Source: Guillardia theta CCMP2712
Lineage: Eukaryota > Protista > Cryptophyta
Assembly: GCF_000315625.1 (NCBI RefSeq)
Contig: NW_005434557.1
Location: 50,938 to 114,937 of the forward strand
DNA length: 64,000 nt
Direction of reading: 5' to 3'
The translations under genes were made by a program, and so were the position numbers. Below are positions 9,065 to 62,573 of this stretch, piece after piece; the first letter of the stretch is position 1, and every line of letters starts with the position of its first letter. The notes under the pieces are model-generated. The model had not been told where the DNA came from. It saw only the letters and a program-made list of their open reading frames with translations, and ran no database searches.

Positions 9065-12000
9065 TGCTTTCCTTGCTCCTCAGTCATCTGCTCTCATTTT
9101 GCTTCTCCTGCTTCTCCTCCTCTCATCTTGCTGCTGCTGCTGCTGCTCCTCCTCCTCCTCCTCCTAGTGCTGCTGCTCTTGCTATGAAGCTTCTCCCGCC
9201 TTCCCTTGATCTCTACAGCCCAATTGCTTTCTTACCCGAGCAACAGATCAAGGTGGTGACGGACCACCCCTCTTCTCCAGCCTCTTCTCCTCCCTCCACC
9301 ACTAGCCCGTGAACGATCGGGAGTGTTTTACAATTTTCTCGGGGGACTCCCTTGNNNNNNNNNNNNNNNNNNNNNNNNNNNNNNNNNNNNNNNNNNNNNN
9401 NNNNNNNNNNNNNNNNNNNNNNNNNNNNNNNNNNNNNNNNNNNNNNNNNNNNNNNNNNNNNNNNNNNNNNNNNNNNNNNNNNNNNNNNNNNNNNNNNNNN
9501 NNNNNNNNNNNNNNNNNNNNNNNNNNNNNNNNNNNNNNNNNNNNNNNNNNNNNNNNNNNCCTCTCCTCTCCTCTCCTCTCCTCTCCTCTCCTCTCCTCTC
9601 CTCTCCTCTCCTCTCCTCTCCTCTCCTCTCCTCTTTTCTCCTCTCCTCTCCTCTCACTGGACTTGTCAGCTTCTATCGATCACGTCCTGTGGACTAACAA
9701 GTTCGAGTCGTTTTGGAAGGAAATCTTTAGACAAATTCAGGTTCACCTGCTCCTGCTCTTGCTCCTGCTCTTGCTCCTGCTGTTGCTGTTGCTGGTTCAC
9801 CTCCTCTACCTTCACTTTCTCCTCTTCCTCTTCCTCCTCCTCCTTTCAGCTCCCAACTTGTCTGTTCCGCACCTACACTTGTCATCATCATCTAAGTCGT
9901 TTCCATTCATCTTCATTCTTTTTGCTCCTTCTCAACATTCTCTCAGGTCATGAAGAAGAAAATCTCAAACCTGTCCAAGGAGATCGAAAGAAGCGCTCCC
10001 TCCCGGTCTCCTGCTCCCCTCCCTTGCTCTTCCTTCTCCGTATCATATCCCTTGCTGGTGGTGGTGGTGGTGGTGGTGGTGGTGTTGCTGGTGCTGTCAA
10101 GTATCTTCTGCACTTCTTTTTCTTGTATTTTTGCTCTTTCTTCTCTACTCTTCAACTTGTAATCTCATGATTTACAAGCAGACAAGTGTACTTCATTCCT
10201 GAAAGTCCTCAAACCTCAGAGGTCCTCCTTCTCCCTCCATCTTCTCCTTCCTCTCGTTTCACTTCTCCTTTCCCCGATTTCTTTCCTTTCTTCTCCTTTC
10301 TTCTCCTTTCTTCTTCCCCCCCTCCTCCCTCCTCCCTTCCTTCACCGCTCCTCTCCTCCTCTCCTCACCGTCTCCTCCTCACCCTCCTCCAGATGGTCAA
10401 CCTCATTCTCCAGCTGGTCCAAGACGCAAAGAAGATCCTCTCGCGAGAGGCTCGTTCCCTCCTCCAGTACTACAACCGAGCAGAGAAGCTTGATCCTTCT
10501 GCTCCTCCCACTTCTACAGGTACCTCCATCCCCTGCCTCCTTCCCCCTCCCCTACTCCATCCTTCTTCTCCCTACCTCCCACTCTCTCCTCTGCTCCTTC
10601 TTCTCCCTACCTCCCACTCTACTCTGCTCCTTCTTCTCCCTACCTCCCTCCCTGTTTCTGACTTCTCTCCTCCTCTTTTCCATTTCTCCTCACCGCTCTG
10701 CTCTGATCTGCTCGCCTCCTCCTCCCCCTCCTCTGCTTCTTACGCTGCTCAAGTCTCGCTGAGACCTGCGCCGCCTCCTCCTCAAGCTTCGCATCTCATC
10801 GAGCTCGTCGAGCTCGAGCTCGAGCCCAACTGGGAGAGCTGTGCAGACAAGAACGTCTCCTGCTCCATCCTTGCCGCTGACGTCGCCGCTTGTCTCGGCA
10901 TCCCTCGCCAAACGGTTCTCTTCTACCCTGCAGCTGCAGCTGCTGCAGCTGCAGCTGCAGCTGCTGCTCTTCTTGTTCTCATGCCTCTCTTCCTGTTTCC
11001 GCCTGCTCTATCGCTCTTCCTCTCCATGTGCCGAACGCTGAGCTTGAGGAGCAGGTTCACGCAGGAGGCGTTGACAGCAGGACGAATAGATGTCTCCTCG
11101 TCCTCACCTCCTTCCTGGTGCCTTTGATCTGCCGTCCTCCCCTCCACCTTCCCGTCTTGTTCTTGCCATGCTCTAGCCAGACTGCCTGACAGGAGATTTT
11201 CATCAGGACATGACGGCTGCACAAATCTTTTCTCTTATGGCGACCATGGTCTTTCCTGCATTACTTCCTCCTCCCTCATCCTCGCTCTCCTCGCTCCTCT
11301 TCTCTCTCTCTTTCTCAGACAGAGCGAACGTCTGACCTTGCAGCAGGTGGCGGACGAGAAGAGCTCTCTCCGAACGCAGACTTGCGTCCGCGCTGTCTCC
11401 CGCGTCACCTCCCTACTCAAAGACGTCAAGTCACTTGCTCCTAATCGCGCTCGGCTCGTCTCCTCCCTAGCCAGCATGAAGGCTCTACATGCATCCGCTC
11501 CTGTCTCAGGTGATCTCCTAAGTTGCCTGCTTCTCCTTGCTATTACTCCTCCCTCCGCCCTCCTCCCTCCGCCCTCCGCCCTCCCTCCAGTCTGTACAGC
11601 ATTTTAGCTTTTGCTCTTCACCTCCTCTCCTCTCTCAGAGTTCCTCCCTCCATCCTCTTTCCTTCACCCTTCCCTTCCACTTTCTTCTTCCTCACACTTA
11701 CAACTTCATCTTGTCAGATAACTCAACTCAGCTCACGGATCTTTCCTTTCACATGCTTGAAGCAAGATGCGAAACTCTCAGTACAGTAAGTGCAACTGCT
11801 GCTGCTGCTCCTCCTCCTCCTCCTCCTCCTCCTTCTCTTTCTCCTTCTCCTTCTCCTCCTCGTCCCTCCAGCCCCTCCTCTCTCTCCACTACTCCCTCCC
11901 CTTCTCATGAGCACTTCCTCCGTCTCTCTCGTTCTTCTCGTTTCGTATTGTGCTGTTTACTTTGTCTCCTCTCTCCTCTCCGCCTTGCCTTCCTCCCTCA

Positions 12001-27815: not shown

Positions 27816-30404
27816 ATGGCAAAGCGTGGTGAACAGAGCCATGCGTGTGAGCAGGTGAGAGGGGGAGGGAGAGAGAGGAGAGGGAGGGATAAGAGAAAGG
27901 GAGGAGAGGGAGGGACGAGGACGAGGAGATAGGTTCGACGATGGATGAAGGGGGGGGGGGGGGAAGGAGGCAAGCGGGAGAGAAGAGGAGGGAACCGAGC
28001 GATGAATTCACAAATTTTGATACACTTGTTTTGCTCTTCATCAGATGCTCGGGTTTGTCACAGAGGCTTTCAAAGAAGCTTCGAATCTGCAGAAACGAAT
28101 CGAGCAGAGAAGAAGCGAACTCGACAAACACAAGTCTCAGCTCCTCCTGAGGTCGCTCAAGGAGCGGGGAATCAAGATTGAAAAAGAGACTTCTTCTGCC
28201 ATCAAGCCAAGCAACATCGTCAAGCTCAACGTGGGAGGAACGAAGATAGACGTAAAGAGAAGCACCATCACTCGCTTCTCCTCCAAACTCAAGTGGATGC
28301 TGAGGTGAACTCGTCCTCTCCTCTCCTCCAGCTGAGCCTCTACTAGCGGTCGCTGGGATCACATCTACAAGCTCGACAATGAAGGACGGATTTTCCTCGA
28401 CTATGATGCTGGCTGGTTCGACCCTATCATCAACCACCTGGTGTACCGATCCTCCTCCTCTACCCCATCATCCTCCTCCTCACCACCACCACTCCCCTTC
28501 CTCCCCCTCCCCATCCTCCTCCTCCTCATCATCATCATCAGCAGCAGCACCACCACCACCACCATCTGCATCCTTTCCTCCTGCCTTCCTGTTACTCGCG
28601 CTCACATAATGCGTAGCGGGAGCTCACAATGCAGGACCCGACCATCCCCATACGGCAGCCGAAAGCCAGTCATGGCGATCAGTTCGGATTCCGGCAGCTG
28701 CAGAAGCATCTTGGCTTGGAGAAGCTGTTCTCGAGTGAAGGCGAGGTGGAGGCGGGAGTGATGAAGCCTTGGATGCAGGCCGTCTTGGCAGGAACCATCG
28801 TGACGACATTGGAAGCAGACGGCAGAGACTGTGAGTTCCGCCTCCTCCATCGTGGAAGCCGCGATGGGTTCGAATGCTCGAAGGTGCAGAGCAAGAGCGC
28901 AGGTGTGGTCAACAGCATCACCATCGTACGTGACACGGAAGGGAACGTGTTTGGGGCCTTTGTGGACGTGGGGAGAAGCTTTCACGAGCAATACATTGAG
29001 TCCAGCAAGGCGTTTCTGTTCCACTTGTCCAGCAGAGGCTCACAAGACCCGAAGCTCTACAAGGTCTATCCCGTCAAGGCCGACCAGAAGCACACAGCGG
29101 TGCGAGGAGTCCGAGCTTGCTGTGCCGTGCTGGGAGCTGGGCCGGATCTGAGCATATCGAACGCATGCAACGCCAACAACGAGAGCTCTTGCCACCTGGG
29201 CACAACGTACGAGAACTATGGGAGCCCTCACGCTCTCACCAACGGTCGCGTCAACTTCCAGGTGGCTGAGCTGGAAGTCTGGCAAGTCAAGCTGGAGCTG
29301 GTCGGAGCCGAGGGTGTCAAAGACGCGAACCGCCGAGTGCCGACCAAGTCCGCCTCGCTCTTATCGGAGCTGACGCGAAGGGTCAAGGACATCGACAGCT
29401 GCGTGCAGGAGCTGCTGGGGGAGGGGGTGAGACTGCAGCAGGAGGAGGAGAACTTGATCGAGGACGGGAGAGATCTCGACGACGAGATGGAGTACATGGA
29501 GAAGATGGAAGAGAAGCACAAGGCACAGGAGATCATCTTCTTCAACGTCGGCGGGAGGAAGCATTACACCACCAAACAGACTCTGTCGCTCATCAAGGGT
29601 TCCAAGCTCTACATGCAGTACGCGAGTGGTCAAGTGCAGGTGCCAGAGACTGACTTGGATGACGACGGAGACATCTTCCTTGACATCAACCCCTACTGCT
29701 TCGGCAAGATCCTTTCCCAGCTGCGGCTTAGACGCCTGTACGAGGACCTGCCGGACAAGGAGCAGGACGAGATCAACATCGGCATCGTCGTGGACCCCCA
29801 GTACTTGGAGTCGTTCGATCGCATGTTGAACTTCTACCAGGTCGAGCAGTCCGACTTGGCCTGCTTCCGTTCCTCCATCTTGCCAGCTCGAGAGCGAGTA
29901 ACCAGATTGCTCCAGCTGCTCCGACCCCACATGCAGGAGATCCCTTGCCGATACGCCTCCCTCCTCTTCCGCGGCAGCCGCGATGGTTTCACGAGGGGCC
30001 AGCTGCAGACCAAGTGGAACAATACGAGCAACAAGCTGCTGTTGGTCAAGGACTCCAACAACAACATCTTCGGGGGCTTCGTCGACTCGAAGAACAACAA
30101 CGCTTCCTCTAGCAGAGCCTTCCTCTTCAGCCTCGAGCTCACTGCTGACATCCATCAAGACTCTCTCACTGTCTGCAGGCTGATCGGAGCCATTCCCGAC
30201 GGCTGCGCCTTCAACTTTAACGTGGGCGGCTGCTTCGCCTTCGGTAGTAGGCCTGACCTGTTCCTGTCCGAGAACTGCAACCAGAACCAGCAGAGCTCCT
30301 GCAACCTCGGGCAGACGTTCAACGCTCACAACAACCCTCACCTCCTCACCAGTGGCTCTCTCAACTTCACCGTGATGGAGATGGAAGCCTGGGGCCTTCA
30401 CTAG
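27816..30404 (+). CDS. KCTD-type BTB(T1)-TLDc-BTB-TLDc tandem protein
   Basis: BTB1 IVKLNVGGTKIDVKRSTI..SGRWD..LDNEGRIFLDYDAGWFDPIINHL; TLDc1 LLHRGSRDGF..NSITIVRDTEGNVFGAF..AFLFHL..LGAGPDL..FQVAELEVW; BTB2 IFFNVGGRKHYTTKQTL..DDDGDIFLDINPYCFGKILSQLR; TLDc2 LLFRGSRDGF..IFGGF..FGSRPDL..FTVMEMEAW. Start is ATG 27816 (with intron) or 28045. Confidence 0.9.
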
Positions 30405-30889
30405 GAATGAGGCGGAAACAGCCCTAAGGTATTTGAGCTCTACTGGCGTCAGCCCTGCTCTTGTCTGATCCTTGAATGTGACGTCAGTCAGAGAGAGGGT
30501 CATGAACGTTGTCGTTGATAGATCATTCTGAATGCTCCTCTTGCTTGAATTTGATCCTCACAACCATGATCTCATGCCCCCTCCCTCCCCGAGCCATTTT
30601 GTCTCTTCCCCTTGTTTGAATTCTCCGCATTTGTAGTCATTCTTGACTCTATCAGCATGTCTTCAGCTATCGCTACTCTCTCCGACGTGAGCAAAACGAC
30701 TCGACCCGGAAGGATGATGTCTCCTAGTCCGTCATCATCAAGTGAAATCGAGAGAGAGCCAAGGGAATGTCCCGCCCCCCTGACTCGAGTCTGTCTTACA
30801 CGCCCTCCTTCTACTCTCACAAACAGCTTCCGGTAGGTCTTGTTGTACATACACGAGCCCTACCGCTACTTGTGCATGCTCGCCTCCTC

Positions 30890-33800
30890 CTACTGGCATA
30901 GAGTGTTGCGGAAGTTCACGTACTCCCTGTGCAGATGCTTCTTGATCCCATGCATCTCCTCCAGCAGCACCTGCCACCGCCTCCATCATCCTCCTTATCC
31001 TCTCCCGCCCCCCTCANNNNNNNNNNNNNNNNNNNNNNNNNNNNNNNNNNNNNNNNNNNNNNNNNNNNNNNNNNNNNNNNNNNNNNNNNNNNNNNNNNNN
31101 NNNNNNNNNNNNNNNNNNNNNNNNNNNNNNNNNNNNNNNNNNNNNNNNNNNNNNNNNNNNNNNNNNNNNNNNNNNNNNNNNNNNNNNNNNNNNNNNNNNN
31201 NNNNNNNNNNNNNNNNNNNNNNNNNNNNNNNNNNNNNNNNNNNNNNNNNNNNNNNNNNNNNNNNNNNNNNNNNNNNNNNNNNNNNNNNNNNNNNNNNNNN
31301 NNNNNNNNNNNNNNNNNNNNNNNNNNNNNNNCCTGCCCTCCTCTCAGCTCTTCCTGCCCGGTCTCTCGCCTCCCTTCCCTCCTACCTCCACGCACACGCA
31401 CAGGTCCCGGTAGCCCCCGCTCAAGCTCGTGCCGCCAGACGGGTCGTACCTGCCCCACAGGCTCAGCCGCATCCCTTGGCTCGACCCGCTTGACTCCTCT
31501 ACATCCCCTCAGCTCACTCCTCGCCTCGTCTCCCTCCCCCTCGCTCCCCGCTTCCCGCTCCCCGCTCCTGCTCCTCGCTCCTCGCTCGTCTTCTTCTGGT
31601 GCACGTACCGGTTCTTGATGTTGGTGATGCTCATGTAGATCTCCCCGCCTTCCTCTCCCCCGCCCGTCTGTCGAAGGCTCGTCACTTCCTCCTCCTCGCC
31701 GTCTCGGTTCTCTCTGCCCTCCTTACCTCCACGTCCTCCGACATCACCCTCCCTCCTCCAGGCTGGTCCCACGCGCTCACCCCGTGCCCCACCACCGACT
31801 GACCCCGCAAGAAGCTCAACCACGACAGCACGTCGTCGATCGACGACACCACGACAGTACATCGCACCAGGTCGGTCAGGCACGAGGGGTCGCGCCTGTA
31901 CGACCTCACCGTCTTCTGCATCGCTCGCGCGCAAGACTTGACGTTACCATGCTCCACCCGCCCCACCCGGTTCCACCCGGACACCCACAGCTGGAAGGCG
32001 GCGCTGACCTCCTGCGCCTGGAGGAAGAGCTGCTCGAAGTCTCGGCTCGCCTGCCGGATCTTCCCGTTCCTCCTCGAGTATCGCCGGCCCCGCAGGCCGA
32101 GCGTCACCCACAAGTACCGACGCCACGTCCGGGTGTCATCGCCGATCACCTCCTCCAGCTCTTGAGCGATCGCCCGGACTCGCGCGCTGATCTCCTGCAC
32201 TACGTGCGAGCTCTCCTCGACGACGCTGGTCCAAGTGTCCTCGAAGCCTCGCATGGCTGCCTTGAGGTCCCTGAAGGTCCTGGCGTACGCCCGGTGATAC
32301 TCCACCACGATCGCCAGCTCCACCAGCCAGCAACCTACCCCGAGGCACAAGAAGCCGAAGCTTTCAAGGTCTGTTGATATGATCCCAACAAACAGGCAGA
32401 ATGCACCCTGGACAAGAAAGGCAGCCATCCAGAAGTAGTGCTGCACGAAATGCGCCAGGTACATCATGATCATAAGCAATGAAGAAGAAATAATCTTTTG
32501 ACTCGAGTTGCAGAATGGTCCTATCCCCGTCCCCTGAGTCGAGCACTGCACAAAGTCGGCTACCATGCAGGCCACGTTGGCCGTCAGCACCAGATGCCCC
32601 GTTGACAGCAGCAGCCACTTGGCTCGTAACGGTGTGCTCAGCAGCCCCAGCAGCACCCCGCTCAAGAACAACAAGCTCCACGCAAAGCTGATGATCGGAT
32701 CTGCCATGACCGATATCCTCACAGTCTTGGGCTTGACGGGCGTGCCCGAGCTCTTGTCCGGCAGCCAGACCTGGTCGGACATGATCGGGCCCAGCTGCTT
32801 GATCCCGAACACAAGGTACACCAGGCTGAGGAAGACGATGCAGCTTCTCGCCGGCAGCTTCACCAGGGCCGTCTCGAGGGAGTTGGTGGTGCGGAGGGCG
32901 AGGACCCCGTTGACGTCAGCGTCTCGGTACTGCCTGAGCCTGTCGTTGAGAGGGAGGAAGCGCTCGTCCTTCTTGTAGTCCTCCACCAGCTTCTCGAGCG
33001 TCCGGATCGAGCTCTCGTCTGAAGCATTGTATGCTGTGATGTCAAGGCAAGATTCCACTATCTGAATGCAACTTTGAGCCTGCGACAGTGCTCTCGTGAA
33101 CAGAGGAAGTTTGTCCAGGGTCTCGATGCCCCGCAGCGCGAAGTACTCGTTGAACTTGTCATACATCCCCGTCTCCTGCAGTACCTGCAGCACCTCGATC
33201 CCCCGAGGGTTGTGTTTCGAGAACTCCCACAGCTTTCGGTCGATGTGCTCCTTCACCACCCTCACCAGACAGTGTGCTATCAGCTCCCCCGCCTCCCTCG
33301 CGCTTCTCTCGACATCTCCGGTTGAGTCTACGTACATGCCAGCCACTCCCTTGCTCCCCTTCCCTCTCCTTGTCTCCTCCCCCAGCCCGACCTCTGCCCT
33401 CCTCCCCGCAGGCAGCAGCATCGCCACCGCCTCCTGCACCGAGACTCCCAGCAGGTACTCGAGTATCGCCTCTCTGTCCCTCCGGACGCCTCCTGCTTGT
33501 ATCAGCTCGCTCGCCCGCGCGCAGCTGCGTACCGACGGCTTCCTGCTGAGGCTCCCGCACGCGCTGGAGAGGGAGGTGCGTCCCTCGGACTCGTCCCGCA
33601 GGATGGGTAGCACGGCCTTGAGTCTCCCGGCGTCCTTGTTGAGCAGGTAGAGCGCTGCCAGCGCGTGCACGAGGAAGTCACTCTCACGGTCGTGCGCCTC
33701 GTCGATCGCTGCGAGCTCCTCCAGCACGCTGTGTTCCTGACCCCAGGTGATGACGGGCACGAAGACGGAGCAGTTGCACAGGTATCTGGCTCTAGTCACC

Positions 33801-34081
33801 CTTGTCTCGAGGGCAGCCAGGTAGGGCACGCAGTCCATGTCGAGGTAGGTCTTGCCGGGGTAGATCTTGTAGACGTCATTTGACCTTTTCGAGAGAGTCT
33901 CGTGCAGGACGCTGTGGAGGCGATCTTTCAGAAGGGCTGTCTCGTGATGGCGGCTGTCGAATCGCTGGTACTCAGGATGGAGCCTGTAGACAAAGATGTG
34001 CGTGTGATCGCTTTTAGTGTCATCTAGTGACCGGGCTCGTTGATTGTTCATTTCAAAGATCATGAAGGGTGTTGCTTTCAT
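30890..34081 (-). CDS. Copy A: TIR-like + SAM-like + 6TM + RelA/SpoT-like nucleotidyltransferase
   Basis: The 799-aa ORF 31682-34081 plus spliced 3' exons mirror copy B; one exon falls in the gap 31017-31331. Motifs: HIFVYRL..TYLDMDCV..CSVFVPVIT..AVLPIL (TIR-like); VLQETGMYDKFNEYFALRGIETLDKL (SAM-like); six hydrophobic helices; VKSCARAMQK, LTDLVRCTVV, IKNRY..GGYRDL, H..Y. Confidence 0.75.
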
Positions 34082-34607
34082 TCACTTGTTGTTCAGCCCA
34101 GAAACCAGCTCAAGGAACGTTGTGGGCGGACACTACATGACTCTCAAACGCTCAGAGCTACTCACCATCGTGAAGAATGTTGGTGCATGACCTACTCATG
34201 TCGTATCAGACTGTTTCAAGCCGCATGCCCTTGCATCGCGCTATCGTCTGCTACCGATCTTCCAGTTACCTTTTTACTTTTGAGCCTACCCCTCCCCTAC
34301 TCCATTACCCCCCCTTCTCATAGCAAATGAACCCGTCCGAGCTCCCACGTCATCACGCCACAAATGTACCTTTATAACCTTATAGTGATTACCCGAATCG
34401 TTGCGGATTCGAGGCTCCTTCAAAAAACAAAGCCTAGTTATACTGTTACTGGGCTGAGCGGGCCCGGGATGAGGGAGGTTACTGCGTGGCATGACCCGGC
34501 CGCCGCCTCGTTACCACTGAGTTTTCAAGTTTGATCCGATGATCCGAGTCACGCATGTCAGAGTCACCGTCACCGGGCTTTCTGACTCGGGCGCTGTGAT
34601 CCGAAGT

Positions 34608-34805
34608 AGTCTTTGATGTCTTTGATATTTTTGATATCTTTGCCATGTCTTCACAGAGTCAAGTTGATGTCTTTGATGTCTTACATTCACTCAGCGGATG
34701 TCTTTGATGTCCGATCTTTGACTCTGTGATTCAACTTGGCAAGTTGATGTCCGAAGTTTGATGTCTTTCAGTCGGATGTCTTTGATATCTTTGATGTCTT
34801 TGAAC
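34608..34805. repeat. Degenerate 9-bp repeat (TTTGATGTC)n in the divergent spacer
   Basis: CTTTGATGTC/TTTGATATC units are repeated many times with interruptions. Confidence 0.8.
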
Positions 34806-35937
34806 TTAGTATCCGAAGTTTGCCAGTGATGTTACGGAGTACGGGTTTTGATATCCGTTTGATGAGTCAGTACTTTGAGATGTCGGAGTCACCGTGCCAC
34901 TGCGACTCGGCGGGCCTCCGGCAGAGCTCGGAGGCAGCCCGGCACCGGGCACCTGCTACCCTGAGGCTGCCATCTGGCACTGACATGAGTCTCACTGAGG
35001 CCGGGCCGATCTGACGGTCCGATCGGCAGTGAGCCGCTGCCGCAGTGCCACGGACAGTGTCAGGGTCAAGCCCGGCCTCCTCGACTCTCCTGATTGTCCT
35101 CGTACTGCTTTTTAACTTAACTTTGAGTAAAGCCACGGACTGACAGCACTAGCTGGATGTCTTGATGAGTCACGTGTAGTAGATGTTTTATATCTTCATC
35201 AGCGACCGTTCGGAGTTCAGAAGCCAACCAAGGGAAAGAGTTTTAGATGGGGTTGGGGTGGGTTAAAACTTGATCAGGATGGGTGAAAATTCACTTAGAC
35301 GATATGGTGGGAGGAGACAGGGGGGTGGGACAATTGAGTGTATTTTTAAAAATATCAAAAGACGTGTTTTGGAGTGAGAATTGATGTAGGTGCAACTCGC
35401 GAAGAGTGTGTAGGTATTTCCAGTCATTCAAGGGGGTAGTCTGGCAGAGGGGGGGTGCTCCTCCTCACAAGGCGGAAAAATGCTCAGTGCGGGGGAACGA
35501 AAGGAGGAAAAGAAAGAGAGAAGGAAGTGAAGGAGAGCGAAGAAAGAGACAGCAGAAGGAGAGAGAACAAACAATCATATCTGCAGTGACTGACAGGCAA
35601 TGGATGGTTGGGAGCTATGCCGGAAGATTGAAATGTTGAATCGAGCGATTCAATCGAAAGCAAACTTTGCCTATCGGCAACACGGGTGAAAGAGATTGAG
35701 CGTGTGAGCGAAAAAGTGCACGAGATTTAGGTTGAACTCGACTCAGAAACTATCATGCAATCCTAGCATCAATTTCGATGGACTGACGAAATGACGATTT
35801 GCTCAAGAGTGTATTTGAAAGGTTTTCAGAACTGATTGTGTAAAATTTGCAGATTCGCATATGCTGCCGGCTGATATGTATCGGGAACGTGGTGATTTTG
35901 TAAAATGGTATCCATGACACGTTAGAAACAGCAGATC

Positions 35938-38900
35938 ATGCACAAGAGCAGGTCCGAGAGTAAGGAAAATGTACTTTTACCTACGCTTGCATCAAACCGA
36001 GCAAAGCGCCCAGTTTTGCACAAGCAACAAACCGGGCTGCAGCCTGAAAGCAACTTACCACTGGCTGCTGCCAAGGACAACCTTCACTTCTTCGTCTACA
36101 GGCTCCATCCTCAGTCCGCCAGCAGCGGACGTGAAGAAGAGACCGAGGCAAACACTGGTCATGACCAGCAGCTTTCAAGGCGCCTCCATCGCATCCTGCA
36201 CGAGATCCTCTCCTCTGAAACTCAGAGCTTCTACAAGATCTACCCCGGCAAGACCTACCTCGACATGGACTGCGTGCCCTACCTGGCTGCCCTCGAGACA
36301 AGGGTGACCAGAGCCAGATACCTGTGCAACTGCTCCGTCTTCGTGCCCGTCATCACCTGGGGTCAGGAACACAGCGTGCTGGAGGAGCTCGCAGCGATCG
36401 ACGAGGCGCACGACCGTGAGAGTGACTTCCTCGTGCACGCGCTGGCAGCGCTCTACCTGCTCAACAAGGACGCCGGGAGACTCAAGGCCGTGCTACCCAT
36501 CCTGCGGGACGAGTCCGAGGGACGCACCTCCCTCTCCAGCGCGTGCGGGAGCCTCAGCAGGAAGCCGTCGGTACGCAGCTGCGCGCGGGCGAGCGAGCTG
36601 ATACAAGCAGGAGGCGTCCGGAGGGACAGAGAGGCGATACTCGAGTACCTGCTGGGAGTCTCGGTGCAGGAGGCGGTGGCGATGCTGCTGCCTGCGGGGA
36701 GGAGGGCAGAGGTCGGGCTGGGGGAGGAGACAAGGAGAGGGAAGGGGAGCAAGGGAGTGGCTGGCATGTACGTAGACTCAACCGGAGATGTCGAGAGAAG
36801 CGCGAGGGAGGCGGGGGAGCTGATAGCACACTGTCTGGTGAGGGTGGTGAAGGAGCACATCGACCGAAAGCTGTGGGAGTTCTCGAAACACAACCCTCGG
36901 GGGATCGAGGTGCTGCAGGTACTGCAGGAGACGGGGATGTATGACAAGTTCAACGAGTACTTCGCGCTGCGGGGCATCGAGACCCTGGACAAACTTCCTC
37001 TGTTCACGAGAGCACTGTCGCAGGCTCAAAGTTGCATTCAGATAGTGGAATCTTGCCTTGACATCACAGCATACAATGCTTCAGACGAGAGCTCGATCCG
37101 GACGCTCGAGAAGCTGGTGGAGGACTACAAGAAGGACGAGCGCTTCCTCCCTCTCAACGACAGGCTCAGGCAGTACCGAGACGCTGACGTCAACGGGGTC
37201 CTCGCCCTCCGCACCACCAACTCCCTCGAGACGGCCCTGGTGAAGCTGCCGGCGAGAAGCTGCATCGTCTTCCTCAGCCTGGTGTACCTTGTGTTCGGGA
37301 TCAAGCAGCTGGGCCCGATCATGTCCGACCAGGTCTGGCTGCCGGACAAGAGCTCGGGCACGCCCGTCAAGCCCAAGACTGTGAGGATATCGGTCATGGC
37401 AGATCCGATCATCAGCTTTGCGTGGAGCTTGTTGTTCTTGAGCGGGGTGCTGCTGGGGCTGCTGAGCACACCGTTACGAGCCAAGTGGCTGCTGCTGTCA
37501 ACGGGGCATCTGGTGCTGACGGCCAACGTGGCCTGCATGGTAGCCGACTTTGTGCAGTGCTCGACTCAGGGGACGGGGATAGGAGCAGAGTGTAACGGTT
37601 TCTCGGATATAATCACTGTGAGCTTTCTGGCTATCATGATGTACCTGGCGCATTTCGTGCAGCACTACTTCTGGATGGCTGCCTTCCTCGCTCAAGGGGC
37701 TTACTGCTTCTACTCGGCTCTAGCTCTTGACAATCAGTTCAGGTACGTGATGGTCTGCCTCGGGGTAGGTTGCTGGCTGGTGGAGCTGGCGATCGCGGTG
37801 GAGTATCACCGGGCGTACGCCAGGACCTTCAGGGACCTCAAGGCAGCCATGCGAGGCTTCGAGGACACTTGGACCAGCGTCGTCGAGGAGAGCTCGCACG
37901 TAGTGCAGGAGATTAGCGCGCGAGTCGGGCGATCGCTCAAGAGCTGGAGGAGGTGATCGGCGATGACACCCGGACGTGGCGTCGGTACTTGTGGGTGACG
38001 CTCGGCCTGCGGGGCCGGCGATACTCGAGGAGGAACGGGAAGATCCGGCAGGCGAGCCGAGACTTCGAGCAGCTCTTCCTCCAGGCGCAGGAGGTCAGCG
38101 CCGCCTTCCAGCTGTGGGTGTCCGGGTGGAACCGGGTGGGGCGGGTGGAGCATGGTAACGTCAAGTCTTGCGCACGAGCGATGCAGAAGACGGTGAGGTC
38201 GTACAGGCGCGACCCCTCGTGCCTGACCGACCTGGTGCGATGTACTGTGGTGGTGTCGTCGATCGACGACGTGCTGTCGTGGTTGAGCTTCTTGCGGGGT
38301 CAGTCGGTGGTGGGGCACGGGGTGAGCGCGTGGGACCAGCCTGGAGGAGGGAGGGTGATGTCGGAGGACGTGGAGGTAAGGAGGGCAGAGAGAACCGAGA
38401 CGGCGAGGAGGAGGAAGTGACGAGCCTTCGACAGACGGGCGGGGGAGAGGAAGGCGGGGAGATCTACATGAGCATCACCAACATCAAGAACCGGTACGTG
38501 CACCAGAAGAAGACGAGCGAGGAGCGAGGAGCAGGAGCGGGGAGCGGGGAGCGAGGAGCGAGGGGGAGGGAGACGAGGCGGGGAGCGAGCTGAGGGGATG
38601 TAGAGGAGTCAAGCGGGTCGAGCCAAGGGATGCGGCTGAGCCTGTGGGGCAGGTACGACCCGTCTGGCGGCACGAGCTTGAGCGGGGGCTACCGGGACCT
38701 GTGCGTGTGCGTGGAGGTAGGAGGGAAGGGAGGCGAGAGACCGGGCAGGAAGAGCTGAGAGGAGGGCAGGTGGGATGGACGATAGACGAGTCGAGCCAGT
38801 GCTGCACGTTCGTACCGGTGAAGGAGTGGGGGAGGACAGCAGGGCTGCGGAAGCACATCTGCGAGATACAGGTGAGGAGAGGAGAGGAGAGGAGAGGAGA

Positions 38901-39183
38901 GGAGAGGAGAGGAGAGGAGAGGAGAGGAGAGGAGAGGAGAGGAGTGGAGTGGAGTGGAGAGGAGTGGAGTGGAGTGGAGTGGAGAGGAGAGGAGTGGAGA
39001 GGAGTGGAGTGGAGAGGAGAGGAGAGGAGAGGAGAGGAGAGGAGAGGAGAGGAGGAGCAAAGAGGAGGGGGGAGAGGAGTAGGATGATGGAGGCGGTGGC
39101 AGGTGCTGCTGGAGGAGATGCATGGGATCAAGAAGCATCTGCACAGGGAGTACGTGAACTTCCGCAACACTCTATGCCAGTAG
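35938..39183 (+). CDS. Copy B: TIR-like + SAM-like + 6TM + RelA/SpoT-like nucleotidyltransferase (1-bp frameshift at ~37926)
   Basis: Exons 35938-38375, 38435-38493, 38653-38716, 38770-38871 and 39103-39183 (all GT-AG) give ..VKSCARAMQKTVRSYRRDPSCLTDLVRCTVVV..IKNRYDPSGGTSLSGGYRDLCVCVEVGW..KHICEIQVLLEEMHGIKKHLHREYVNFRNTLCQ*. Confidence 0.75.
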
Positions 39184-39699
39184 GAGGAGGCGAGCATGCA
39201 CAAGTAGCGGTAGGGCTCGTGTATGTACAACAAGACCTACCGGAAGCTGTTTGTGAGAGTAGAAGGAGGGCGTGTAAGACAGACTCGAGTCAGGGGGGCG
39301 GGACATTCCCTTGGCTCTCTTTCAGTTTCACCCGGGTCCATCGCTTCTCCTCCTTGCTCAGGATGCTCAGGAACTTGTTGGGAGGGTCTTCATGCACGCG
39401 CACCCGCCTGCCCTCCACCTGAAGGAGTCGGTCAGCTCCTCTCGCGTCTCAGGCTGCTCGCACGGGGTGGTCGAAGGCGATGGAGCACGCCCAGAGGAAC
39501 AGGGCGCCAGCCTCGTCTGAGTGCGAGTTGGTCCGGTACCTGCCATGGCAGAGACTCACAAGGAGCCTCGTCGCGTTCCTCACTCGCTCACTTCCTATCC
39601 CCGAGGATTGGCGTCCCCATGCCCGCCATGTGCTTTCTGAGCTGAAGGCAAGAGACGTCACGAGGCGAAGGCGGAGGGGAGTAGAACCTGATGCATTCG

Positions 39700-40690
39700 G
39701 CCCGTCTCCGGGATCAGCTTGAGCAGGGACAAGTGGCCGAAGACGAGGGAGGGAACGGACCTGCATCGCTCAGCTACCTCCTCTCCTCTGCTCAGAGCTG
39801 CTGCTACCTCATGCTCATGTACCGCGTGCGAGCACGGCGTCCCCTGATGTACCAGTCAGTGAGCCCGAGGGGAGCAAGCGCCATCTTACTGCAGCTCAGT
39901 GTCTATCGAACCTTCTCCTTCCACCTTCCCTACCACCACCTACAACCGGTCAAGACAAGCTGAGAACGCTCAAGGGAGAAGAATCGTCAAGGAGGAGGCT
40001 TGCGAAGTGTGCAACGGTAGCAAGGAAGGGAGCAAAGGGAAGCAGGTAGCGGGTGAAATTCATACCGCCATGTACATTTTCTCAACCCTCCTTTGAGCGA
40101 ACTGTTCACAGATGTTGGCAGCAACCTGTCTGAAAATAGTCACGAGAGTGGGAGCAAGGAGGAGGAGGAGGAGGAGGAGGAGGAGGAGGAGGAGGAGGAG
40201 GNNNNNNNNNNNNNNNNNNNNNNNNNNNNNNNNNNNNNNNNNNNNNNNNNNNNNNNNNNNNNNNNNNNNNNNNNNNNNNNNNNNNNNNNNNNNNNNNNNN
40301 NACATAATGATTTCATGCGCAGGTGTATCAGTGGAATCCGAACAGCCTGGGGATCGTCTTTGTCTGCCTGTTCACTCCGTTCCATTGTTACCTCTTTCTT
40401 CTTGGCATTCCAGATGAATCGCTGCTGATGTCATATGTGGTTTGGGCGACTGGATATGGCTACATGCTGTTACTTTTGGCGTACCTCTTTACCCAAAGAG
40501 AGAAAATCTTGTCGAACATAAACAACGCTTCTTATCGCCACCAGGTGGAAGAATACAACACAGCTTGGAACGCTAGGAGACAACAAGAGACTGTGGTGAG
40601 TTGTTATGATCTGCACTGACACGAAGTCGATATATGATGAGTGTGTAGGAGTACGACGATTTCTTGAACACGCTGAATGTTATGCGATGA
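39700..40690 (+). CDS. Hypothetical membrane protein fragment
   Basis: Exon 40323-40595 encodes two hydrophobic helices then EEYNTAW; intron 40596-40648; last exon EYDDFLNTLNVMR* ends 40690. The 5' structure is unclear because of the gap at 40202-40301. Confidence 0.4.
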
Positions 40691-40828: not shown

Positions 40829-43323
40829 TCACATTTCATCTTGGAGCGGGCTGCCGCAGTGGCGGCTGGCAGCGGAGGAGGAGGAGGAGGAGGCGACGTT
40901 TCTTGTCTTGGCTATGAGGAGGACTCCTCCCGTCCCGACGTCAAGTCTATGGCAGGGCGAAGCCTTCCAAGGGCCCTCCTTTCTCATCTCTGACGTCAGG
41001 ACGTCAGCGTCTTCGTCATTGTCTTCCGCTTCCATGCTGCTCTTGTTCCTCTCGTCGTCTGTCGCACTTGTCAGCGCGAGCATGAGTTTGAGGCTGACGG
41101 TACCTCGAGCATGTGGAGGAGCTACCTCTTCTTTCAACCTCGGGCTCTCATCAACGTCTTTCTCTTCGTCTCCGCCAACACTCGACAGAGACGCTGACAG
41201 CAACGACTTCACGTCTCCGCTGCACCCTGGCTGCCAGTGCGACCTGCGAGTTTCTCTGGGTAAGGAACCATCACAGCATGGCTTCAAAGGTGAGGGTCTG
41301 GTGAAAAGACGGCATCGGCAGAAGGAGGGAGGAGGGAGAGGAGGGAGGAGGGAGGGAGGGAGGAGAGGGAGGAGGAGGGAGGGACGGGAAGGGAGGGAGG
41401 GAGGGAGGGAGGAGGGANNNNNNNNNNNNNNNNNNNNNNNNNNNNNNNNNNNNNNNNNNNNNNNNNNNNNNNNNNNNNNNNNNNNNNNNNNNNNNNNNNN
41501 NNNNNNNNNNNNNNNNNNNNNNNNNNNNNNNNNNNNNNNNNNNNNNNNNNNNNNNNNNNNNNNNNNNNNNNNNNNNNNNNNNNNNNNNNNNNNNNNNNNN
41601 NNNNNNNNNNNNNNNNNNNNNNNNNNNNNNNNNNNNNNNNNNNNNNNNNNNNNNNNNNNNNNNNNNNNNNNNNNNNNNNNNNNNNNNNNNNNNNNNNNNN
41701 NNNNNNNNNNNNNNNNNNNNNNNNNNNNNNNNNNNNNNNNNNNNNNNNNNNNNNNNNNNNNNNNNNNNNNNNNNNNNNNNNNNNNNNNNNNNNNNNNNNN
41801 NNNNNNNNNNNNNNNNNNNNNNNNNNNNNNNNNNNNNNNNNNNNNNNNNNNNNNNNNNNNNNNNNNNNNNNNNNNNNNNNNNNNNNNNNNNNNNNNNNNN
41901 NNNNNNNNNNNNNNNNNNNNNNNNNNNNNNNNNNNNNNNNNNNNNNNNNNNNNNNNNNNNNNNNNNNNNNNNNNNNNNNNNNNNNNNNNNNNNNNNNNNN
42001 NNNNNNNNNNNNNNNNNNNNNNNNNNNNNNNNNNNNNNNNNNGAGAGGAGGGAGAAGAGGCCTTTTATCTGGTGGTAGGCCGGCGGCCTGATGACAGCCG
42101 GCAGGCCAGACGGATGCCAGCTAACTGCATACCACGACCCTTCCTTCCTACTTTCTTAAGTAGGTCCGTGAGCCGTCTGTCAGTGTCACCTGCCTTCTTT
42201 CCTTCCTTCTTCCCTTCGTGGGCCGGCCCGCCGGAGGAGGAGGACAATGGAGGGAGGACGGACGATCCACAGGATCTCCTTGGGACTAATTTATCATTTA
42301 TCTTTCTTTTTTCATTTAATAATTCCCTATTCTCCCACTCACAAAACAGGAAAAAAATCAAAAAAAAATCACTTACGGTTTGCCGGCCCCTTTGCTCCCG
42401 GTAGGGAGGGAGGAGGGAGGGAGGGGAGGAGGGGAGGGGAGGGAAGGGGTGGAGGGAGGGAGGGAGGAGGGAGGAGGGAGGAGGGAGGAGGGAGGAGGGA
42501 GGAGGGAGGAGGGAGGAGGGGTATCCCACAGGAGGGAAGGTGGTTTGACTACAACAGCAAGGTGAGGATCCTGTAGCAACTTGAGGTCAATCGTTGAGCT
42601 CTCAACTACTTGGGTCACCTCGATGAGAACTTTCAGCTTTGCTTCCGTGCAGCCGGAGAGATGAGCTTTGAGGGCCGAGGCATCCTTTGCTTGCTTGGGG
42701 GGCTTGTAAACAAACATCAGCTGCTCTCCTGCTCCAACACAGTCCTTGCATATCAGAGCTGAGCCGGACTTCTGCAGAGCGTCCGGCCGAATTGAAAGAT
42801 CGTTCGTGCTTGAGCACTGCTCCTCGTCTCGCGGAGAGGTACCTGCTCCTTCCACGCGGAACACTCTCGGGTCTCCACCGCGACGAGCAGCTCGCTTTGC
42901 TGACGTGAAGGTGGGGAATTTGTCGGGGAAGCACAGATGCAGCGCTGCAGCCACAGGGAGCCTGCCCTCCTCGTTCTTCTTCTCCTTGAACCCCTCCGGA
43001 GGAGAAGGCAGAGGGTCAGGGAGGGTCACCATCTCAATTCTCTCTTCAACTTTCTGCTTCTTTCCAGAAGTTTCCCGTGCATGTGGCTGGCTTTCCTGCG
43101 GCGATGCCTGTTTGCGCTTCGCGCGTAGCACTCCGATCTCCTTGTAGATCTCAAACCATGAGGATGAGCGCTGAATGTCTTGAGGGGCTGGTCGACGACC
43201 ATGTACGTCATAAAACTGTTTCACACGCATAGACATCTGTGCTTTCAACTCGCGCTCTCGCTCGAGGTCTCCTTGAGAAACAGTCGCGCTCGCGTCGTTG
43301 TGCTCTCCATGAGCGTGCGACAT
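40829..43323 (-). CDS. RluA/RluD-family pseudouridine synthase-like, C-terminal half not visible
   Basis: Motif I: LKVLIE|DPHLAVVVKP. Motif II with catalytic Asp: PCHRLDVGTGGVLLIAK. S4-like FPTFTSAKRAARRG upstream. The gap 41418-42042 lies inside. Confidence 0.7.
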
Positions 43324-44908: not shown

Positions 44909-47900
44909 TGTTCTGGTTGGAACCGATAGCTCTCTGGATCAAATCAAGAAGTAGATGTGTAGCTATTCGATCGTTGAGTGTTTGGAGCTGCACTGAACCC
45001 TTTAAGATTGGCTTGGAAAATCTGGAACTAACCGGCCTGTACAACGTGCAAGGTCAGATCTTTGACGACAATTCATTTCACCCCTCAAAAAAAAACTGAA
45101 TCAGTGTCTTCTCTCAGGAAAGCAAGGTCAGAAATATGAGAACAAACTTATTCAACCATGAAATCTTTGAATTGAGCTAGAGAACCAAAACCTATAGTGC
45201 TTCAACAACAACTATTTACAGACAGAATGCCTAGTTCTCAACATCATCTTGTAGAGCATCCTTCGTCAGAGATTTTCGCACATCGTATGTGTCCGCAAGT
45301 GCGTTGGGTGAATGAGAAAATTTTCCCGGCCTCTCTAACATCTCTAACAGATCATTTCAATGTGTTTCTCTCGCCCCTGCATGCCCTTTCCTCCGTTCAC
45401 GATTTTCCGTCTGCCATCCTCTGTACTCGCTTGCTCCGATCCCCACCGTCGGCACCACCCCACTCCGACCGCATCTCACCACCACCTGTCCTAAGGACCA
45501 CCCCTCTATATTCCTGAAGGTTGAAATACCCACCTCTGGCGCCTACCTATCTATGATTCAATGCTACCCGTAGTTGCGACCAATTTTCACCCCTGCCTTA
45601 GAAGCCAGTATTGTCCAACACCCGTTGATTCTACCACCCCACCCCCTCGATTCCAATTCCAGGCAATCCCGGTTCCGAGGGAGCGGTGCTCTTACCTTCT
45701 TCCTCCGTGGTAGGGGGTCCCCATAATAGGTGGTAGGGGGTCCCCATCATTTGAGTAAAACCCTCCCACCCCCACCCTACACAAAAAGTACCCAAAGTTT
45801 TGGGTACTACTGCTTCTCAACTTCCAGGCAAGCGTACGGACCATACCATCACTACATTCGTGAGTACCCTACCCTGTTCGGCTGATCAATCTCTCACAGA
45901 CCTGCGGTCCTCCGAAGACTACCCTCCTCTCCTACGAACCAATGTACCCACCCCAGTAAGTCGTACCCTTCCGATCCGCAATGGTCAACACCTCCTACTC
46001 CCAACCGGACGCTTCCTTGGTATGCCTGGACCCACGTGCCAGGGGTAGGGTAGGCAGACACCTGACCATCCCAGGTTCCCTGCCGTAGTAAATACCTACC
46101 CTACCCTGGAAAAGTCCTTTCATTCCCTCTGACATGTACCCGTACAAGTTCGAGGCAGGACGGTCCCACCCCGTTGATATCTTTCTCTGAACAAATGACC
46201 CCCACCCCCCCTGTCATTTGTCTCGCTTCGATGCACCCCATTCCCAGTTAAAAATGTTAATATCATGACCCCACCATAGTCATCTCTGAGACATCAGACT
46301 ACCCCTACTCAATAATCTTAGAGGAGCCGTGATTGAGTAAAAGCTGGTACTCCCAAGCTAAAATGAAGGTTTTTACTAGTCATGATTCATGTACCCGTCC
46401 TATGGTCGGCAGGTTTACACCACCCCTCAGATCCTACCCATAGGGAGGTGACCAGAGGAAAGGAGGGGTAGTACCTCTCAGATCGGACGACCCCTACCTC
46501 TCTTCTCCCAACGTCGTGCCAGCGCAAATTAAAACCTTTTATGTTATGGGTCGAGATGAGATGGGGTATATTGTTAAAAGCAATCGGAAGGGTATTGAAG
46601 GGTGGGTACTTGAAGTGAGGCAGGAACTCGGGGTGGGGATGGGGGTGGGGGGCGGGGNNNNNNNNNNNNNNNNNNNNNNNNNNNNNNNNNNNNNNNNNNN
46701 NNNNNNNNNNNNNNNNNNNNNNNNNNNNNNNNNNNNNNNNNNNNNNNNNNNNNNNNNGCTCTGATAACCCTAAGGCAACTTACGCCCCTTGCCTTTAAAG
46801 TACCCTACCCCTATCTCCCTCATCTTCCATCAGCAACCCCTGCAGGATTTGTCCGACCACCTACACTATACGCTGCTTGGAACTACTGATGGCAGGGGGG
46901 CCCGTCCTTGGTCCCGGACAAAGATTGTACCGCAGTGGTGACCCCCCCCCCTGACCCCCTCCGGCAACTTCGGATGCCTTGGTACCGGATCTCAAGAGTT
47001 CGCCTGACTCGCCTGTCTTGCTGACCGTCGTGACTGGGCCATGTGACCACTCCGGTGACGGGTACCTCCAATACTTTACTCAAAGTTAAGTCAAAGATCA
47101 GCTCGCCGTACTGAACTTTAACTTAACTAGTCTAGGCTCTTTACTCAAAGTGAAGTCACTGCACGGTTGCGGCCTCCGCCGGCGGCGCCGGGCCCGCCGG
47201 GAGCACTGACACGGTACACCGTACTTTGCCCGGGCCTCCGACGGGCCTCGGTGTGACTCCTGAGCAGTGGCCGCCCGGAGCCCGGCGCTCGGAGGCTCAG
47301 CGGCTGGCAACCTGACGGACTCCGTTGTAACAAGACCGTTTCAAGTTTCCTGAAACACATAAGTCGTCTTGGTTTACTGGCAGGAGAGTTTTTGCCAAGT
47401 TAACTCGGCGGCTATCTGCCATGCCAGGCTGGCGTCAGAAAGTCACACAGTGACAACTTGAACATGATGAGAATGTCAGCAGAGTTCCAAGTCAAGATAT
47501 GATAAGCCTGACCGTCTGCGTCAAGTTCACAGTTATGCTGAACAGTGGGCAATAACCATTCATTCTGTAGGATTTCGCCCAGGAAAAACCAAGGAAAAGT
47601 GGCTTTTTGTCAGTTCTCGATCTCCCAGTACCGGTTATGACTAATGACCCGGTGGTTTCCCCTGAATATGGGGGTGGTGGTACCTGGATTGTTTGAGAGG
47701 GGTCGTTGAATTAGTTTTTAATACAGCGTGTTTTTGTTCAAATATCTCATAGCTATTTTTGTATGAGTCAGTTAGACATTTGTATTATTTTCGTTTTATT
47801 TATTTTTATATATATAAACACATACATGATGTTTACATATTGTTACCAGGAACTTCCAATCCCGTACAGAATGTCACAACATACCGGTACTGCTTACCCC

Positions 47901-54134: not shown

Positions 54135-56300
54135 TTGAAGACAGTGTTGAACAATGTGACAGGTCCGGGAGATGTTGGAGACGTGAGACCTGACAACCAT
54201 GAACCAAAGTTTGATGTTTTGCTCAACCCAATTTGCAGGTCTTTTCAACGATACTTGGATGACGTTGAGAAGGTTTTTTTCTTTCATTTCATAAACGATG
54301 CGATTGGTGTGATGGTCCTTGTCAGGCTGCTAGGGATTGTGCGGCAGCTGTGCGCCGGCTTGTCTCAAAGGAAAGCTTTGCATGCAACGCTGACAGGCTT
54401 TGACATCGTTTACCAGGGACCTCCCATATGGTTGGAAGACAAGCATGCCTTCCCCGTATGCTCTCCTTGTTTCCCTCCGCAACTTGTAACCTTATATGGT
54501 CGCCCAGCTACCAGACGAAGACACGCACGTGGTGCGCGTGTGGTTCTGTAGCACCAACACGGAAGAATCGGCGAGGTTGAAGGTTATCCTCCTCCTCCTC
54601 CACCACCACCACCACCACCACCTCNNNNNNNNNNNNNNNNNNNNNNNNNNNNNNNNNNNNNNNNNNNNNNNNNNNNNNNNNNNNNNNNNNNNNNNNNNNN
54701 NNNNNNNNNNNNNNNNNNNNNNNNNNNNNNNNNNNNNNNNNNNNNNNNNNNNNNNNNNNNNNNNNNNNNNNNNNNNNNNNNNNNNNNNNNNNNNNNNNNN
54801 NNNNNNNNNNNNNNNNNNTCCAAGCGAGCGAGCGAAAAGGTGACGGGCAGGCAGAGCGTGGCTGGGATCTCATCGGAGAAAGTTGGCAGAAGGAAGTTAT
54901 TGTCGATGACTGCGAAAGAATGCAGAATTGTGATGATAGGGGATTTGTGGAGATGCCTGGAAATGTTGATAGACCATGTAGGATGGAGGTATGTGATGAT
55001 GTGGCTTGGCAGGACTTTAGGGCCCAATGTCAAGATTGAACACCGATGAGATGTATCATCGAAGAGAACGAGAAGGTCAGAGGTCAAAGTCCCGAGTTGC
55101 GACGCACAAACTTATGATGGTAAGCAACAGTGAAAGAGACAGCAGTTCTCCTCCTGCTGCACAGCTGCAGGGATTGAGAAGAACGGCAAGCCAACCGCTC
55201 CAGCATGTGGCAGCACAGATTCAGCGGGAGGGGCTGTAGGTAGGAGGAGGAGCTCACATGGAAGGACAGGAGTGTTCCTTCGTACTCAGAGCTCGGGGAA
55301 TCTAAGGAAGCACCTCAATGCGCCTCCGAGCCTCTCGCAGGCATCTCATACCTCCACGAGGCGCAAGGAGACAGAAGCGCCGCCCCCGCCCTCCAAGCAT
55401 GCGAGGAAAGCGCAGGAACCAGCGCGCGTAGGTACGCCAGGAGAGGCGCGAAAAGCAAGTCGACTGGAGAGGCAGCAGCAGGGAGGGTTTCACCTCCTTA
55501 ACTCTCAGCTGCAAGCTCTTGCGGGCGAACGGAGCAGGAGCTTGTCGCATCTGCGGGAGCTTGAGAAGACATTGACGACGTTGAGGAAGGGAAACGAAGC
55601 TGCGAGAGGAGCTGAAGAAGTCGTGGACCCTGACGAGGAACCTGAGAAACCTCTTCCATCCCCTCGCATCCCAAAGGTAGTTTGCGACCTACGAAAAGCC
55701 GTGCAGAAGTCCAGCTTCCTCCTACAGCAAGTCGCCAAGCTGAAAATGAACGCGTCAAGCTCGCAAGGTGATGATACACTGATGGTGATCATGCCGTATG
55801 TTGCTCCCTTCCTCCCTTCCCCTCCTCCTCCCTTCCTTCCTTCCTCCTTCCCCTCCTTCTCCTGTTCTTCCTCGATCTTCCTCCGCTTTCCTCTCTCGCC
55901 CACAAGTCTCTGCTCCTCTTCTCCTCTGTCCTCCCATCCCTATGATCTTGACTTTGGAACAGCAGCTCGAGCTCGCCGACGGTCCTCTTTACTGAGAAAG
56001 TTCAAGAGCTTGCGGGTATTGATTCCCTCGCCGGAGAATGGGAGGAGGAGGAGCGTCGCCTCAGCCCACACGGGAGGGTCGACGAGCAGGAGACGCAGAG
56101 CAAGTGAGGCAGGGAAGTTCCTTGAGCAAGGTGACTCACATGCGGGAGAAGGGAAGTGAGCGTCATGGTTTGCTGATATGTGGCACAGCTGGGGTAACGA
56201 AGCAAGAGGATGCGAAGGAAAGCCAGGAAGATAGAACGGAATTGAGAGAGAGCGCGAAGCTTTGTAGCACGACGAAGTCACCGCAGGTTGTCAGATATCT
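54135..56300 (+). CDS. Hypothetical multi-exon protein (low complexity, short coiled coil)
   Basis: ORF 55272-56159 (LNSQLQALAGERSRSLSHLRELEKTLTTL) and upstream exon-like pieces; gap 54625-54818. Confidence 0.3.
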
Positions 56301-62278: not shown

Positions 62279-62573
62279 NNNNNNNNNNNNNNNNNNNNNN
62301 NNNNNNNNNNNNNNNNNNNNNNNNNNNNNNNNNNNNNNNNNNNNNNNNNNNNNNNNNNNNNNNNNNNNNNNNNNNNNNNNNNNNNNNNNNNNNNNNNNNN
62401 NNNNNNNNNNNNNNNNNNNNNNNNNNNNNNNNNNNNNNNNNNNNNNNNNNNNNNNNNNNNNNNNNNNNNNNNNNNNNNNNNNNNNNNNNNNNNNNNNNNN
62501 NNNNNNNNNNNNNNNNNNNNNNNNNNNNNNNNNNNNNNNNNNNNNNNNNNNNNNNNNNNNNNNNNNNNNNNNN

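Follow-up and report, generated by a model that had tools for sequence, protein, structure and literature searches.

Two diverged membrane-domain patches in near-identical inverted paralogues of Guillardia theta: a likely case of arm-to-arm gene conversion between old copies

The stretch analysed here, called the window throughout, is 64,000 nucleotides (nt) of the cryptophyte Guillardia theta CCMP2712 (RefSeq assembly GCF_000315625.1, contig NW_005434557.1, positions 50,938 to 114,937 of the forward strand). It carries two head-to-head paralogous genes, copies A and B, that are nearly identical over most of their length and strongly diverged in two short patches of a predicted membrane domain. 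We consider it likely that these are old inverted paralogues homogenised by arm-to-arm gene conversion, and that the membrane-domain patches escaped this process or were imported long ago. Repeated interlocus conversion would keep the inverted arms of about 3.1 kb nearly identical. The two patches, in the outer part of the fourth transmembrane helix (TM4) and at the tip of the TM5-loop-TM6 hairpin, would have a deeper ancestry than their surroundings, each resembling a different ancient block type that is also present in Hanusia phi, and would not have been overwritten in strain CCMP2712.

Copy A lies on the minus strand (31682-34081) as a large first exon with a 799-codon open reading frame (ORF). 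It matches GUITHDRAFT_117878 (same 90% cluster), whose annotated model has 852 amino acids and includes downstream exons. Copy B lies on the plus strand, where the ORF as assembled (35938-37956, annotated as P0156) encodes 672 amino acids, and its homology to copy A runs on out of frame to 38420 and further. In the middle is a unique spacer without strand (33874-36229), with the diverged ends that encode the two N-termini and the divergent upstream region that the copies share. The homogenised arms, at 30742-33873 on the minus strand for A and 36230-39331 on the plus strand for B, show an identity of about 99.5-100% apart from the blocks, and of 96-100% when taken piece by piece. In inverted orientation, one piece of 1367 nt is 100% identical (A 32507-33873, B 36230-37596), and further pieces reach 98% (A 32174-32347, B 37756-37929), 99% over 845 nt (A 31332-32176, B 37926-38770) and 96% (A 30742-31009, B 39064-39331). 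This alignment agrees with the initial annotation, which had described near-identical inverted copies over about 3 kb, synonymous sites and 3′ flank included. A tblastn search with a Hanusia homologue resolves the identical "3′ flank" into an intron and more exons downstream of it. B's arm takes in this intron together with the exons at 38639-38737 and 38767-38874, and the intron and 3′ exons are 96-99% identical between the copies. A's arm contains an assembly gap (31017-31331), which removes part of A's downstream exons.

Two blocks interrupt the identity. Block 1 (A 32471-32518, minus strand, codons 522-537; B 37585-37632, plus strand, by codon alignment with A) covers the last four residues of loop L3 and the first twelve of TM4. 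Block 2 (A 32348-32419, minus strand, codons 555-578; B 37684-37755, plus strand, likewise by codon alignment) comprises two thirds of TM5 on its outer side, all four residues of loop L5 and six residues at the start of TM6. In the codon alignment neither block contains a gap, and identity falls to 18 of 48 nt in block 1 and 29 of 72 nt in block 2. Between them is an island that is identical at all of its 51 nt (A 32420-32470, minus strand, codons 538-554), corresponding to the inner end of TM4, a cytosolic turn and the start of TM5. The block boundaries are sharp and can be resolved to the codon. Taking the membrane domain as a whole, 39 of its 191 codons differ between A and B, versus 4 of 483 in the other conserved domains (Fisher p = 9e-19). 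Much of this had been read correctly before: the two diverged blocks with their peptides, the identical stretch that separates them, a conserved pair of cysteines (C524, C562 and C579 are present in both copies) and a diverged extreme N-terminus, where the first ~95 residues are homologous yet only 48 of 93 are identical. Both blocks lie where they had been placed, except that block 2 had been started 6 nt further in, its first codons differing only synonymously.

The mosaic has an age structure. The A/B pair is old, most of the gene has been homogenised recently at the DNA level and the blocks have the deepest history. We counted synonymous differences only at codons for the same residue in both copies. 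Such codons differ in 10 of 12 cases in the blocks, 0 of 13 in the island, 9 of 47 in the N-terminus and 4 of 470 in all other domains; the blocks exceed even the N-terminus (p = 7e-5). With the NG86 method the proportions of synonymous (pS) and nonsynonymous (pN) differences in the blocks are 0.97 and 0.50. The N-terminus has a pS of 0.39, or a synonymous divergence (dS) of 0.55, from which the age of the pair follows, and values elsewhere are 0-0.02. The same island codons reach a pS of ~0.6 when A is compared with the paralogues C339 or C53, therefore the identity of the island in A and B is not mere protein conservation. The GC content at third codon positions (GC3) gives a similar picture. 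The homogenised parts have values of 0.81-0.89 and the N-terminus 0.69-0.71, whereas the blocks have 0.50 (A) and 0.60 (B). The low values of the blocks relative to the homogenised parts are significant (binomial p = 2e-7 for A, 1e-4 for B), and the homogenising conversion is probably GC-biased. The earlier suggestion that gene conversion homogenises most of the gene is thus well supported, by the identity at synonymous sites, in the intron and in the 3′ exons, by GC3 and by the tree of the core that is described below.

The G. theta genome holds about 15 paralogues in this family, and two further near-identical pairs also differ in the membrane domain. These are a head-to-head pair on C4 (L011/L012, G000:C4:1071618-1079280) and a tandem pair on C37 (L006/L007, G000:C37:146463-153304). 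Differing codons number 26 of 191 in the membrane domain vs 10 of 476 in the rest for the C4 pair (p = 3e-8), and 41 of 191 vs 9 of 446 for the C37 pair (p = 2.5e-15). The escape is therefore specific to that domain. Synonymous differences are likewise enriched there (p = 0.003 for the C4 pair, 5e-5 for the C37 pair), which indicates an older coalescence of the membrane domain and is a poor fit to positive selection driven by point mutations on a young duplicate. In the C4 pair, no retained patch has more than 10 differences in 60 nt. A separate inverted pair, L022/L023 (G000:C100:16354-24864), consists of ORFs of ~1078 amino acids that have only a Tas1-like domain in common with the A/B family. 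In the part examined this pair is 97-100% identical over ~2.1 kb and contains no internal diverged patch.

Where did the block sequences come from? Each of the four matches only itself in the 87-Mb assembly, on both strands (BLAST, E up to 10), so there are no donor cassettes and there has been no recent import. The idea of cassette-type variation, which the initial annotation had raised, fails on this absence of silent donor copies. At the protein level, A's blocks share 16-20 of 40 residues with C339 and H. phi P0003, and 12 of 40 with B. B's blocks share 16-18 of 40 with C53 and Hanusia P0007, and at the nucleotide level they match C53 at 30 of 48 and 40 of 72 positions. A tree of the block columns places A with C339 and HanP3 (support 75/90), apart from B. 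Taken together, these likenesses are suggestive of two ancient block types.

Sequences from outside the assembly add to this picture. Two contigs from the ENA metagenome project PRJEB17505, L027 (ERZ930064) and L028 (ERZ930071), come from a close relative. They appear as X27 and X28 in our trees, and both are short-read metagenome assemblies of a repeat, which assemblers can mis-thread. L027 has A-like flanks on both sides and L028 has B-like flanks on both sides; the relative's A-side flanks are ~88% identical to the window and its B-side flanks 97-100%. The two contigs have nearly the same core, with an identity of ~98% to A and B. The core tree has the form ((A,B),(X27,X28)), in which X27+X28 has a support of 98/92 and A+B is weakly supported at 64/36. 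Such grouping of core copies by genome is a signature of concerted evolution. B's blocks are stable between CCMP2712 and this organism (44 of 48 and 65 of 72 nt identical). For L027, with its A-type N-terminus and B-type blocks, a single arm-to-arm crossover (a simple inversion) was considered and is ruled out by its A-type 3′ flank. A G. theta transcript from MMETSP, P0157, equals copy B in its 5′ part, blocks included. Its last ~130 residues differ from A and B and match C339 up to where an assembly gap cuts the C339 ORF, and it is probably a chimera produced by de novo transcript assembly, joined via a conserved motif. The B-type blocks are thus independently supported by P0157 and by both contigs. 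A-type blocks are known from the JGI assembly alone, and a search of other samples for fragments that carry them (query residues 440-640) gave none at E up to 1e-10.

Copy B as assembled contains a single-nucleotide deletion at 37926 (plus strand), a single C where A has CC (32176-32177). This puts the C-terminal Tas1-like domain out of frame, which is why the annotated B protein stops at 672 amino acids without it. The reading frame is intact at the equivalent position in L028 and in P0157, and the missing C is due to an error in sequencing or else to a recent lesion. The window contains eight assembly gaps with 1934 N in total (6331-6430, 9355-9559, 31017-31331, 40202-40301, 41418-42042, 46658-46757, 54625-54818 and 62279-62573). 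Trinucleotide purine/pyrimidine runs at 28492-28539 and 40159-40201 (CTC/CAT-type and GAG-type) produce spurious inverted-repeat matches that flank the A/B pair.

The family is predicted to encode a TIR-like N-terminal domain, a six-helix membrane domain and a C-terminal domain that resembles Tas1 and the RelA-SpoT proteins. AlphaFold models built with 117 homologues have a predicted local distance difference test (pLDDT) score of 86.7 for the whole protein and 94.7 for the membrane domain alone. They contain helices at 409-434, 456-481, 484-515, 526-545, 547-568 and 573-623, in agreement with the six transmembrane segments proposed from the sequence. The loop region 482-483 and the flanks before TM1 and after TM6 are rich in Arg and Lys, and L1 bears N-x-S/T sequons in several paralogues. 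Given these charged flanks, the L1 sequons and the two end domains, which would need cytosolic nucleotides, loops L1, L3 and L5 would be non-cytosolic, and the charged flanks and end domains cytosolic. The variable blocks had been proposed to form non-cytosolic loops. In the inferred topology the outer side holds, and the loops do not: only ~8 of the 40 block codons lie in L3 and L5, and ~32 lie in the outer parts of helices TM4, TM5 and TM6. A soluble ligand is therefore no more plausible a target than a lipid, a partner helix or an oligomer interface.

The family profile matches Tas1 (PDB 6ox6), a (p)ppApp synthetase of the RelA/SpoT type, over 42 residues (profile positions 691-732, E = 6.6e-6); the downstream exons encode the rest of the Tas1-like domain, and in copy A part of it falls in the assembly gap. 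Pfam scans, which covered A, B and nine members of the family, found no significant match. With the whole model, Foldseek returned plant TIR domains at probabilities of 0.77-0.96, but with E values of ~0.1-0.4 and template-modelling scores of 0.43-0.50, as well as weak matches to TRPM. Pfam TIR_2 is present only in a distant relative, P0041, and distant relatives join these modules with TIR_2, SAM_2, kinase and HEPN domains. A structure search with the membrane domain (VIA-align) found generic helical bundles only, the best being a de novo design (Z 9.7), and no convincing solved receptor or channel.

Why should the patches persist? Our own explanation, to which we give a little less than an even chance, is that selection removes conversion products in which a membrane surface peculiar to one copy has been erased. 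Surfaces of this kind could set the specificity for a lipid, a partner helix or oligomerisation. Several results weigh against this explanation, or against the wider reading of which it is a part. The ratio of nonsynonymous to synonymous divergence (dN/dS) is below one in every measurable comparison, with no sign of selection for difference: 0.056/0.264 = 0.21 for B vs its orthologue L028 in the blocks, and 0.047/0.125 = 0.38 and 0.089/0.157 = 0.57 for the membrane domains of the C4 and C37 pairs. The A vs B comparison of the blocks is saturated and falls outside the measurable ones. The positive selection for which the initial annotation had proposed a test in the loops does not appear in these figures. 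Furthermore, L027 and L028 both carry B-type blocks, despite their A-type and B-type flanks, so the patches apparently can be overwritten. Both contigs also have deletions in the conserved TIR-like domain (two in frame in L027, and one out of frame in L028 that splits the ORF), which could be decay or misassembly. Together with the frameshift in B as assembled, these N-terminal deletions mean that constraint may be relaxed. The low dN/dS, the single block type in the relative and the signs of decay all argue against strong selection. With respect to ancestry, an approximately unbiased (AU) test with 51 block columns does not reject monophyly of A, B, X27 and X28 (p = 0.15), therefore the separate ancestry of the two block types is suggestive only. 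Finally, the identity of the long arms comes from a Sanger-era assembly with a gap in one arm.

It is possible, though we are inclined to doubt it, that selection for difference had no part in this. The membrane domain, and above all the two patches, may simply be the least constrained region, so that it drifted past the identity threshold for conversion, a runaway divergence of the type described by Walsh and by Teshima and Innan. The block columns are indeed among the least conserved of the membrane domain in an alignment of the family from Guillardia and Hanusia; in a wider set of 51 homologues, residues 561-578 alone are conspicuous (entropy 3.14 vs 2.75 for the domain), block 1 being average at 2.82. 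A dN/dS below one throughout and a related organism with one block type at both loci also suit such neutral escape. However, the 51-nt island is fully homogenised between two blocks of ~60% mismatch, therefore heterology did not protect its neighbourhood. The small differences between the C4 patches are awkward as well, as a divergence of 10 or fewer in 60 nt is probably too little to block gene conversion. Import is another route to the same pattern, and one that we regard as unlikely: the pair would have been fully homogenised, after which short conversion tracts from a third, diverged member pasted blocks into one copy, e.g. C53-type blocks into B. The synonymous divergence of the blocks does exceed that of the N-terminus, B's blocks are nearest to C53, and their GC3 of 0.60 equals that of the C53 blocks. 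That said, BLAST detects no donor for any of the blocks in the assembly. The best paralogue blocks match at only 55-63% identity, which makes any import ancient, and two separate tracts would be needed with the island left untouched.

The pattern could also have been produced without any such history, if the arms were diverged throughout and reads of both copies had been collapsed except at the two most different patches. The N gap in A's arm gives some grounds for this, as do the identical stretch of 1367 nt, which is probably longer than a Sanger read, and the 1-nt indel of B that is found neither in transcript P0157 nor in the related contig. We nevertheless think an assembly artefact very unlikely, as the assembler resolved scattered single-base differences between the arms, the same pattern recurs in two other pairs on other scaffolds at different levels of divergence, B-type blocks sit within the same core in an RNA assembly and two metagenome contigs, and the GC3 contrast belongs to the sequence and not to its assembly. 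Least credible of all is programmed diversification, in which the patches would be switched as cassettes or hypermutated in a targeted way, as happens in antigenic variation or with diversity-generating retroelements. The sharp boundaries and equal-length replacements speak for it, but the genome has no template or donor on either strand, B's blocks have remained stable across CCMP2712 and its relative, and the block types are common to Guillardia and Hanusia.

Conversion between old paralogues, with membrane patches left behind, thus remains our preferred reading. A more far-reaching proposal, which we offer as speculation and judge rather unlikely, is that specificity in a new eukaryotic family of receptor-enzymes is determined by the faces that TM4-TM6 present in the outer leaflet. 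At least two ancient types of these faces would predate the split of Guillardia and Hanusia, type I comprising those of A, C339 and Hanusia P0003, and type II those of B, C53 and Hanusia P0007. Neighbouring copies would be kept different by selection while conversion homogenises their signalling domains, and now and then a conversion tract that runs across the patches would redistribute the types between loci. The same 190-residue membrane domain emerges from three independent gene pairs as the one region that is permitted, or is able, to differ between copies, and in the A/B pair the variable part shrinks to 40 codons in the outer portions of TM4-TM6 and their loops. The value of this is a first concrete hypothesis for where specificity may reside in an uncharacterised family, and a small, swappable target for experiments; the specificity-determining part has possibly been localised. 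Our literature search found nothing about this gene family or about gene conversion at this locus.

Some features of the locus are familiar from better-known systems. The ampliconic palindromes of the human Y chromosome undergo arm-to-arm gene conversion, and like the A/B locus they consist of near-identical inverted arms around a unique spacer, non-coding DNA included. The G. theta arms differ in being only ~3 kb long, in having two internal islands of saturated divergence and in their old, diverged inner ends, which are the N-terminal coding parts. Immune receptors have hypervariable patches that contact the ligand, e.g. in the peptide groove of the major histocompatibility complex (MHC) and on the leucine-rich repeat (LRR) surfaces of NLR proteins. 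Short diverged patches in an otherwise homogenised family, with old patch types common to several species, are shared with the A/B system. However, the A/B patches lack a dN/dS above one and are mostly membrane-embedded helix. As to the enzyme, Tas1 and the RelA-SpoT-homologue pyrophosphokinases are linked to the family by the profile match in the C-terminal domain. The G. theta protein differs from Tas1 in being eukaryotic, membrane-anchored and fused to a TIR-like domain, and the Tas1-like domain is not where the copies differ. Concerted evolution with escaping segments is itself a textbook mechanism, known in other gene families such as that of CEACAM32 (PMC7042247). In this member of the ruminant CEA family, the leader exon and introns have been converted and the exons for the Ig-like domains spared, for which the authors invoke selection against conversion (PMC7042247). 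There, as in A and B, conversion covers part of the gene and leaves the segment for one part of the protein unconverted (PMC7042247). The A/B pair differs in that nearly the whole gene has been converted and only 48 + 72 nt inside one exon, in membrane helices, have been spared.

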